64,000 bases of DNA, from positions 4,960,001 to 5,024,000 of the forward strand of contig CATNEN010000011.1 in the NCBI GenBank assembly GCA_950097015.1, in the 5' to 3' direction. This document shows positions 15,701-18,700 of the stretch, one piece after another. The position numbers and the translations under genes were made by a program. The DNA comes from Macrostomum hystrix (lineage: Eukaryota > Animalia > Platyhelminthes). Positions within the stretch are counted from its first letter, which is position 1; each line of letters opens with the position of its first letter. The notes below the pieces were generated by a model. That model did not search any database, was not told the DNA's origin, and saw nothing but the letters and a program-made list of their open reading frames with translations.

Positions 15701-18700
15701 CCTTCTCTCTCCCTCTCGCTCTCTCTCTCTCTCCTTCTCGCTCTCTCTCCCGCTCTCTCCCGCTCTCTCCCTCTCTCTCCCTCTCTCTCCCTCTCGCTCT
15801 CTCTCTCTGCTTCTCGCTCTCTCCTCTCTCCCGCTCTCTCTCTCCCTCTCTCCCTCTCTCTCAGGCCAGCACCGGCGTCTCGTACGACCGAGTCAGTGCC
15901 ACGGAGTTGAGTGAGTGTGGATTGAGTTGCGGGGCGCTGCCGAATCGATTACGATATGTTGAGATTGAAAGCTGGATTTGAACAAGCGCCTATAGCCTAA
16001 TGGCTAGAGCGCTAGGCTAGACTCTACTGATGAGCTCCACTAAGAGCGAAACGCGTCTGGAGTTGCCTTGGTTCGAATCCTGATTTCAATTTTTTCGATA
16101 CATATCGGAATCGATTCCAACATTAGATTTTTGAAATTCAATGGGCAGTATCCTCTCTCCTCTCTCCCACTCTCTCTCTCCCTCTCTCCCTCTCCCCCTC
16201 TCTCCTCTCTCATTTTCTCCCCTCTTCCTCCCTCTCCCCAGTTTCCTCGATCAGTCTCTCCACCCTATGCATATTTCCCACTATCTTGCCCAGCTGCATA
16301 AACTGCATTTGAAACACGCAAAGCTTGCCTGCCATTTGCATTTTGTCTCTTTGCTAGCAGAAAATTTGCTTTGAGCTGTTCTGGACTAGCGCATGCATAT
16401 AGTAATTCAATTCTGATAAATATAAAATAACCACAAAGGCAGCTTAGATTATGGGTCATCAATCTCTTGTGCACTGCTTCTCTGTGCCCGCCTGTCTGCC
16501 TGTCTGCCTGTCTGCCTGTCCCAAGCGCAGGCAAATTTGCAGACAAATCGAGCAGCAGGAGAGAATCTTTGAGTTGCCCTGCTCTCGCAGTTATTAAATT
16601 AACTGTGAGTAAAATTTCGTAGCCTATCTCTCCATAGATCCCAACCCGGCAGATATCATTGAATTAATATTTTTGTCTCCTAGAAGAAGCAGACTTCACC
16701 AAAGGCACAAGAATTTAGATGCTATCAGGTGAAAAATGCTTGCTTCTTTTGAGCTCTCAATTTCCGCAGCTAGGATCAGAAAAATTTGTTAACACAGCTG
16801 GCATTAGGGAAATCTGATATTGAAATCACTTTGATATTAATTCTCGTATGCTCTTATAAGCTTCCTTCCGTTGACTCTATTGCTTTTGAATTTTAACTCT
16901 TTGATCTCTTCCTCTGACTCCTCATTCTCCTAATGTTACTCTATCTGTCTGTGTCTGTCTGTCTGTCTGTCATTGTGTCTGTATGTGTTTCAATATCAAT
17001 ATGAAAAAAATCTATATTAGATTGTTTGTATCAAGATTTGTCATTTGTTAGACGGCCCACTAAAATAAGGGATAAGAAAAATGATTGGCCAGAGAAAAGT
17101 TTGTTCAGCGCTCAAAGCTTAACTAAGTTTATAACAAAAAAATATTTATTTGGGCAGTTTCGAGCTGGAGTAGTTGATCAGGAAAAATTGATTCCCTTAT
17201 CAGCAGAAAAAACTTCTGAGTCACAGGGGAGAAAAGCGGATCGTTGAGTAGCTGAGGCATCTTGTCTGTCAAAAATATTTTATGAAGAAAATTTTTATTT
17301 TATCTGCGCTGTTCTAAAGCAGCGGGCCGCATTGACCGTTGGAATATGAGATAGGGGAGAGCTGACAGGGGGGAGATGAGACACTGTAGAGAAGCGATAC
17401 GGGAGAGATGAGATACGGGAGAGATGCGACACGGGAGAGATGAGACACTGTAGAGAAGAGATACGGGAGAGATGAGATACGGGAGAGATGAGATACGGGA
17501 GAGATGAGACACTGTAGAGAAGCGATACAGGAGAGATGAGATACGGGAGAGATGAGACGTGGGAGAGATAAGACACGGGAGAGATGAGACACAGGAGAGA
17601 TGAGACAGGGAAGAGATGAGACACAAGAGAGATTAGAGGGGATTTGACTGAAGATATGAGGGGAAGTTCTGATGTTCTTATTTCTGCACACTGTCACATC
17701 CTATCTGACGGTCATTCAGGCTGACACATTGAAAGCAATTTAACGCAGTTAATTTTTTTTCATCGAAGCCTTTGCCTAGGCAACGGGTCGGGAAAACCTA
17801 ATTTGCATATTAACGCCGCAATAATTATGTCGAATAGAATGCGGGGATGAGAATGATGGGATTTGGGAGAATGAGCTTATCCAACTGTTGGGTAAGGTTG
17901 AGGGAGGGTAGCTCGCTTGCCTCCGGGCCGATTGGGAGAATAACAAAATAACTGGAGACCAAATAGTCAAGATGAAAGCTTGCTAGCCAATGATGCTTCC
18001 GCGCAATGGAGGGGTTTAATCTTCAGCCAACCATGGATAAAGGGGCACTGCTGTGCTCATACGTCTGTGAAACTGTTCTCAGATAAGCTTTTGCTGATGC
18101 CAATAATTCGGTTAGAAAAATAAATGTCACTCTTCTATGTCACTCTTCTATGTCACTCTACTATGTCACTCTACTATGTCACTCTTTATTATCACTCTAC
18201 TATGTAACTCTACTATGTCACTCTACTATGCCTCTCTACTATGTCACTCTACTATGTCACTCTACTATGTCACTCTACTATGCCACTCTACTATGCCTCT
18301 CTACTATGTCACTCTACTATGTCACTCTACTATGTCACTCTACTATGCCACTCTACTATGCCTCTCTACTATGTCACTCTACTATGCCTCTCTACTATGT
18401 CACTCTACTATGCCACTCTACTATGTCACTCTACTATGCCACTCTACTATGCCTCTCTACTATGTCACTCTACTATGTCACTCTACTATGTCACTCTACT
18501 ATGCCACTCTACTATGCCTCTCTACTATGTCACTCTACTATGCCTCTCTACTATGTCACTCTACTATGTCACTCTACTATGTCACTCTACTATGCCACTC
18601 TACTATGCCTCTCTACTATGTCACTCTACTATGCCTCTCTACTATGTCACTCTACTATGCCACTCTACTATGCCTCTCTACTATGTCACTCTACTATGCC

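Follow-up and report, generated by a model that had tools for sequence, protein, structure and literature searches.

This analysis concerns a 64,000-nucleotide stretch of Macrostomum hystrix DNA (the window; contig CATNEN010000011.1 of assembly GCA_950097015.1, positions 4,960,001 to 5,024,000 of the forward strand) and, within it, a repeat unit that carries a type I hammerhead ribozyme (HHR) between sequences resembling the A and B boxes of an RNA polymerase III (Pol III) promoter. The unit lies in a K2P (TASK/KCNK9-like) gene, for which tblastn searches with three K2P proteins located five plus-strand exons from 9763 to about 25388. Open plus-strand frames at 13.2-13.5, 19.1-19.3 and 23.6-23.8 kb match the Pfam domain Ion_trans_2. 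The last exon matches K2P/TASK proteins (KCNK9, sup-9), with the best match coming from Macrostomum lignano, and the individual exons are 70-91% identical to the M. lignano protein, as fits a macrostomid flatworm or a diverged paralogue in one. From this exon map, the unit is positioned in intron 2 (exon 2 ends at 13492 and exon 3 starts at 19183) in the sense orientation, as a preliminary description made from the sequence alone had stated. The features of the locus are listed in Table 1.

Table 1. Features of the hammerhead-carrying unit and of its K2P host gene (positions are those of the window; MFE, minimum free energy)
Feature	Position	Strand	Basis or remark
K2P exon	9763..9882	+	tblastn
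Exon 2 of K2P gene	13322..13492	+	tblastn; Pfam Ion_trans_2
Upstream CT microsatellite (~525 bp), insertion target and/or spacer	15337..15862	.	Tandem Repeats Finder, periods 6-10
Repeat-unit core, 290 bp, between CT-rich tracts	15863..16152	+	CT microsatellite on either side; contigs of other copies match inside these limits
Outer left arm of rod	15942..15959	+	17/18 pairs with 16100-16117; paired in MFE fold
Inner left arm of rod, including GGATTTGAAC	15964..15983	+	17/20 pairs with 16071-16090
D-arm-like hairpin AGCGC / TAGCC-TAAT-GGCTA / GCGCT, containing the A box	15985..16013	+	MFE fold
Pol III A-box consensus TAGCCTAATGG	15993..16003	+	Sequence pattern
Type I HHR	16014..16068	+	Rfam HH9, 35 bits, E 2.5e-7; full set of core nucleotides; helix pairs verified
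Helix III palindrome ACGCGT	16051..16056	+	Monomer: 2 bp + 2-nt loop; dimer: 6 bp
Pol III B-box consensus GGTTCGAATCC, perfect	16070..16080	+	Single match in 64 kb, 0.31 expected
T6, Pol III terminator-like run	16090..16095	+	Distance from B box as expected for a tRNA gene
Outer right arm of rod, beyond T6	16100..16117	+	Inverted repeat, MFE fold
Downstream CT-rich tract (~90 bp), likely 3' tail or spacer	16153..16240	.	Repeat analysis; one contig joins similar CT-rich DNA to unit start
Exon 3 of K2P gene	19183..19278	+	tblastn; Pfam Ion_trans_2
K2P exon	23612..23839	+	tblastn
K2P exon	24597 onward	+	tblastn

The A box, the B box, the T6 run, a complete type I HHR cutting after 16057 and the palindrome ACGCGT had all been reported in the preliminary description, and each is present in the sequence. 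All of the nucleotides conserved in the core of type I HHRs (CUGANGA ... GAAA ... UH, with a G10.1-C11.1 pair) were found: CTGATGA at 16027-16033, GAAA at 16048-51, and a G16034-C16047 pair that corresponds to G10.1-C11.1. The cut is predicted after C16057, the last base of a GTC triplet. Checks of the individual pairs gave a helix II of 4 bp (GCTC/GAGC, 16034-37/16044-47) closed by the 6-nt loop CACTAA, and a helix I of 6 bp (16021-26/16058-63) that is followed, beyond a small internal loop, by AGGC/GCCT (16014-17/16065-68). In a monomer, helix III consists of an A-U and a C-G pair around a 2-nt loop and is unable to close as a hairpin; two cofolded copies are more stable than two separate monomers by 5.8 kcal/mol. 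Canonical animal HHRs have a helix I of 6 bp, a helix II of 4 bp with interacting loops and a helix III of 1-2 bp with a small palindromic loop, a design that hinders cleavage of the monomer and permits it once two copies pair (PMC4209133). The three helices found here follow this design, and the term "minimal" that was first applied to the ribozyme should be replaced (PMC4209133). Based on its core and its helices, we regard the HHR as real and as a canonical animal type I ribozyme.

A scan with hammerhead covariance models had been proposed in the preliminary description as a check. The Rfam model Hammerhead_HH9 matches 16009-16080 on the plus strand with 35 bits (E-value: 2.5e-7 in a 351-nt search), which is below the gathering score of 52 bits, and at gathering scores Rfam has no match anywhere in the 64-kb window. 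The shortfall is due mainly to helix III, which lacks 5 nt relative to the model, and also to a different helix I.

The positions of the HHR and of the tRNA-type boxes on either side bear out the earlier proposal that the ribozyme occupies the place of an anticodon arm. The start of the B box follows the start of the A box by 77 nt, compared with about 45 nt in a tRNA, and the 55-nt HHR stands in for roughly 25 nt, from the anticodon arm through the variable loop into the T stem (its 5' side). As many chance matches to the loose A-box consensus are expected (10.9 in the window), the A box counts only through its position near the other features, 34 nt upstream of the ribozyme core and on the same strand. 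Bases 15993-16012 resemble the D-arm consensus of the Rfam tRNA model, with the GG in the stem and not in the loop. ARAGORN (default stringency) found no tRNA in the whole window, either with or without introns, the Rfam tRNA model gave no plus-strand match even at E-values up to 10, and the would-be acceptor and T stems show no pairing. What survives of the tRNA gene, as far as can be read from the bases, is a set of promoter-like signals and not a fold. The tRNA model also produced a minus-strand match at 15971-16036 (12.8 bits, E-value: 9.6), in which the GGATTTGAAC arm, paired with the B box in the rod, takes the part of the "T arm"; this candidate was rejected as a chance match, most likely a by-product of the inverted repeat. 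The complementarity of TAGCCT (15993-98) and AGGCTA (16014-19) is as previously described, and it is possible that their pairing acts as a conformational switch.

Pairing of the flanks into a rod, another of the earlier observations, was reproduced, with 17 of 18 positions paired in the outer arms and 17 of 20 in the inner arms. The 176-nt RNA that these arms delimit has a folding energy of -73.7 kcal/mol (z -7.8; equally stable shuffles, 0 of 200) and is 75% paired, G.U pairs making up 6 of its 66 pairs. The antisense B-box-like sequence that had been noticed opposite the B box is GGATTTGAAC, and it is with this sequence in the rod, rather than within a T stem, that the B box pairs. The plus-strand fold is more stable than the minus-strand fold by 9.4 kcal/mol and, with its G.U pairs, is in keeping with an RNA structure formed by the hammerhead strand. 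If a circular unit of 336 nt were built from the window copy, it would be 70% paired (z -5.4).

An inverted repeat that is paired at 17 of 18 positions and frames a compact unit of 176 bp, together with a minus strand that also folds well, might instead point to a miniature inverted-repeat transposable element (MITE), in which the 18-bp terminal inverted repeats (15942-59/16100-17) would be transposase sites and the hammerhead and boxes would be cargo. We think this very unlikely. A target-site duplication is absent at 15942/16117, and the similarity between copies extends past the repeats to 15863 and 16152, which makes the repeats internal to a 290-bp unit. Other copies break within this unit (at 15905 and 15993) and not at the inverted repeats. 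Furthermore, self-complementarity involves the entire interior, as for a rod-shaped RNA, and not the ends alone.

The 176 bp had at first been taken for a discrete element or chimeric gene, but they are the core of a unit of at least 290 bp that lies in CT microsatellite DNA and is one of several copies. Other copies were identified by comparing 15845-16170 with Logan contigs of four public runs. Several distinct contigs, from runs of the same organism, match the unit at 93-99% and have different flanks. One of these other copies starts at 15993 and one at 15905, and both are preceded by CT-rich or CT/CA-rich DNA unlike that of the window; we interpret them as 5'-truncated copies in similar surroundings. 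One contig links CT-rich DNA resembling the 3' edge of the unit, via a 46-nt CT-rich spacer, to the start of the unit. This is suggestive, and only suggestive, of a head-to-tail junction with a period of 336 bp, as the contig extends no more than 2 bases into the preceding core. Four differences between copies fall within the rod: those at 16040, 16041 and 16081 are at unpaired positions, while the U>C change at 16064 converts a G.U to a G-C pair, and all four are predicted to be neutral for the structure. The boxes and the ribozyme core show no differences among the few contigs available, a sample that is too small to prove constraint.

Position 16040, in loop II of the HHR, is a C in the window and an A in every other contig from three runs (family loop CAAUAA), so the window copy is the deviant one. 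Because loop II is part of the tertiary contact with helix I, the window copy may be slightly impaired. A pattern search and blastn (word size 7) detected no second copy in the 64-kb window, and thus the head-to-tail tandem repeats of 170-400 bp that characterize retrozymes are not seen at this locus. The unit has no coding capacity, and no homologue was found for the pseudo-protein in the plus-strand frame at 16044-16298. Among contigs encoding K2P relatives, one unrelated metagenome scaffold was recovered. The introns of the K2P gene are full of CT-type microsatellites, the same type of DNA as that surrounding the unit; in intron 1, approximately 2.3 kb of CT-rich low-complexity DNA (window 10847-13224) is open in three plus-strand frames.

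Penelope-like elements have terminal repeats that carry hammerheads with a palindromic helix III (PMC4209133), and a 2026 preprint derives animal retrozymes from such elements. The unit could on these grounds be viewed as a detached terminal repeat of a Penelope-like element (a pseudo-long terminal repeat) and not as an independent family. We consider this very unlikely for three reasons. First, no open reading frame (ORF) of the reverse transcriptase or GIY-YIG-like kind was seen by eye among those listed within approximately 10 kb, the Pfam scan having covered the four K2P exon ORFs only. Second, the HHR is of the canonical design and not of the minimal Penelope type. Third, the Penelope-type metagenome hammerheads that share ACGCGTC carry no A or B boxes.

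From their sequences, the two boxes are possibly a functional Pol III promoter. Generic tRNA-derived short interspersed nuclear elements (SINEs) have an A box within approximately 20 nt of the 5' end and no internal Pol III terminator, whereas here the A box is 130 nt inside the 290-bp unit and the T6 run, as well as a second T-run (T5 at 16128-32), is internal. Because T6 is internal, Pol III could make only an RNA of approximately 115 nt, and not the whole unit or a template for transposition. Two contigs from probable RNA libraries of related organisms are relevant to this point. The first (157 nt, depth 11) covers 15939-16095 at 98.7% identity, and its 3' end is the last T of T6. The second, from another library, spans 16082-16168 and crosses T6. 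Neither contains a joint between units. Contig ends are not molecule ends, and DNA carry-over is possible in libraries of this kind.

The exact coincidence of the first contig with the end of T6, the match of both boxes to consensus, the tRNA-gene distance between the B box and T6 and the lack of box variants among the few contigs are what a stand-alone Pol III small-RNA gene would predict. Such a gene would make a tRNA-scaffolded hammerhead RNA of approximately 115 nt, ending at T6 and having its own function, for example as a dimer partner that acts in trans to process longer family transcripts, or in regulation of the host gene. We think this quite unlikely, as the sequence forms the core of a longer unit that is repeated and has truncated copies, the first contig starts at 15939 and not approximately 12-20 nt upstream of the A box, the second contig passes T6, and a tRNA fold is absent according to both ARAGORN and the plus-strand search with the Rfam tRNA model. 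It is also unlikely, in our estimation, that the boxes form a functional split tRNA promoter for the family. Pol III would then produce an abundant tRNA-scaffolded hammerhead RNA of approximately 115 nt that ends at T6 and pairs in trans, via ACGCGU, with family transcripts to switch on their cleavage. In another version, tandem arrays would be transcribed past T6 and so provide precursors for circles.

Based on these results, the window probably contains a solitary, essentially intact copy of a multi-copy, non-coding macrostomid retroelement of the ribozyme-carrying kind, which includes the non-long terminal repeat (non-LTR) retrozymes and the Sm-alpha-like SINEs. It would consist of the 290-bp core with a CT-rich spacer or tail, the core containing a decayed tRNA gene in which the HHR has taken the place of the anticodon arm. 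The sequence of events that we envisage is as follows. A tRNA gene would have decayed while keeping its A box, B box and T-run at tRNA-gene spacing, and a canonical type I HHR would have replaced the anticodon arm, the variable loop and the 5' side of the T stem. In tandem or multimeric transcripts, two hammerheads are expected to be joined by pairing of their ACGCGU palindromes and to cleave after GUC. A reverse transcriptase of a Penelope-like element or of a long interspersed nuclear element (LINE) may then copy the circle at nicks in CT/AG microsatellites, generating 5'-truncated and tandem copies. At this locus, the unit would have inserted into, or grown with, a (CT)n microsatellite in intron 2 of the TASK-like gene. 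The boxes may bind TFIIIC and Pol III, in which case the product would be a tRNA-like hammerhead RNA of approximately 115 nt.

Several points weigh against this interpretation. The locus has a single unit, and what can be said of tandem arrangement, of the number of copies and of how well the boxes are conserved comes from a few short contigs. The RNA-level data are assembled contigs alone, in which cleavage, circles and transcript ends cannot show. The lone contig that covers 15939-16095 could be DNA carry-over, and it begins approximately 40 nt upstream of a start directed by the A box. Finally, no target-site duplication is visible, and inspection by eye of the ORFs listed within approximately 10 kb identified no reverse transcriptase partner.

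For a retroelement copy of this kind, two activities suggested in the preliminary description need to be revised. It had been proposed that the element could cut the host pre-mRNA. As its short helix III (2 bp with a 2-nt loop) needs a dimer, self-cleavage of the lone intronic copy is predicted to be poor and a cut in the pre-mRNA unlikely. The RtcB-ligatable ends left by cleavage had also been mentioned. A single unit that is cut once falls into two linear pieces and yields no circle, since a circle needs two cuts in tandem units. After a single cut, the 5' piece of a Pol III transcript would bear a 5'-triphosphate and the 3' piece a 3'-OH, and RtcB could do no more than rejoin the two. We view the lone copy as, most likely, a passive insertion in the intron, and for annotation purposes the locus is a repeat copy within an intron from which cutting of the host pre-mRNA is unlikely.

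Additional features were observed elsewhere in the window. The A-box pattern search detected a long array of 20-bp tandem repeats at 1-1000, each unit having TAGCTGATRGG on the minus strand, and a tandem array with a period of 32 bp at 48639-49676, with TGGCACATGGG in each unit. On the minus strand, a 340-aa open frame at 30309-31328 has a C2H2 zinc-finger-like motif (CDTCGQMF...HRLKLH) and adjoins a Q/A-rich open frame at 28991-29998; these are probably part of a neighbouring gene on the opposite strand. A plus-strand open frame at 63423-63926 (GGDFNAQIGK...) resembles, by eye, the apurinic-type endonuclease domain of a LINE retrotransposon, and could serve non-autonomous elements as a partner in reverse transcription.

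Among Rfam families, the HHR is most readily compared with Hammerhead_HH9, which comprises intronic HHRs of amniotes. The core is the same, helix II is near-identical (GCUCC-loop-GAGC) and both are intronic and in the sense orientation. The two differ in that helix III has 2 bp and a 2-nt loop here and is a stable hairpin in HH9, and in that this HHR belongs to a repeat family while HH9 occupies a conserved single-copy intronic site. A second comparison is with engineered tRNA-ribozyme Pol III cassettes and ribozyme-plus-RtcB systems for circular RNA, which combine a tRNA-type internal promoter with a hammerhead and generate cut ends that RtcB can ligate. In these cassettes, the ribozyme follows an intact tRNA or the cargo is flanked by two ribozymes. 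They are artificial, whereas the Macrostomum unit has a single natural ribozyme nested within the promoter and, if our interpretation is correct, would provide a compact natural template on which to test Pol III-driven ribozyme RNA.

A scan with the pattern CTGATGAG-N12-CGAAACGCGTC gave no matches among public viral contigs. In metagenome contigs the same pattern matched 10 loci. None is a member of this family: all lack A and B boxes and are either other hammerheads or chance matches. Soil metagenome contigs L001-L003, L007, L009 and L010 contain a separate hammerhead family with a helix I of GTTACACACAG/CTGTGTTAC, the same ACGCGTC helix III and no tRNA boxes; it probably represents an element of soil invertebrates, of the Penelope-like or retrozyme kind. 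No account of ribozymes in Macrostomum was found in literature searches, and none of a hammerhead nested between the two boxes, the contrast with Sm-alpha in this respect being known from secondary sources. Judged on sequence, the hammerhead-between-boxes architecture is real and apparently undescribed.

In animals, non-LTR retrozymes consist of 170-400-nt units in tandem that carry type I HHRs; they are expressed as rod-like circles, which RtcB closes, and platyhelminths are among the animals for which they have been reported (PMC7229834). The Macrostomum unit is similar to these in that its length is within 170-400 nt, its HHR is of type I and it has no coding capacity. In addition, the predicted unit RNA is 70% paired, which is in the range of retrozymes and agrees with the self-complementarity of approximately 70% expected of them (PMC4918200). 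It differs in that the defining tandem arrays and abundant circular RNA are not seen at this locus. According to a 2020 review, retrozymes seem to lack promoters (PMC7761336), while consensus A and B boxes are present in the Macrostomum unit. The one classical exception to this lack of promoters is Sm-alpha of schistosomes, in which a whole tRNA is joined to a hammerhead. If the promoter is functional, the Macrostomum family would be the first of the retrozyme type with its own promoter wrapped around the ribozyme.

Another close parallel is with Sm-alpha and Sj-alpha of Schistosoma. Each is a high-copy, non-coding flatworm repeat of approximately 330 bp with tRNA-type Pol III elements and a canonical type I hammerhead, and the ribozymes are alike in that helix I has 6 bp and an internal loop, helix II has 4 bp and a 6-nt loop, and helix III is very short. 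As in Sm-alpha-like SINEs, tRNA-type A and B boxes are found within the unit. The tail or spacer of the Macrostomum unit is CT-rich, which distinguishes it from Sm-alpha. The schistosome repeats carry a full tRNA-Gln apart from the HHR (PMC4918200, PMC2770079), and tRNAscan-SE labels 2,342 copies of Sm-alpha as tRNA-Gln (PMC2770079). In the Macrostomum unit no cloverleaf was found and the HHR lies between the boxes, so that the distinction from Sm-alpha drawn in the preliminary description holds as far as it can be checked in secondary descriptions of that repeat (PMC4918200, PMC2770079). If our interpretation is correct, a free-living flatworm has a family in which a ribozyme replaces the anticodon arm while the boxes and the terminator are kept, and the combination of promoter and ribozyme would be older or more flexible than the blood-fluke case indicates.

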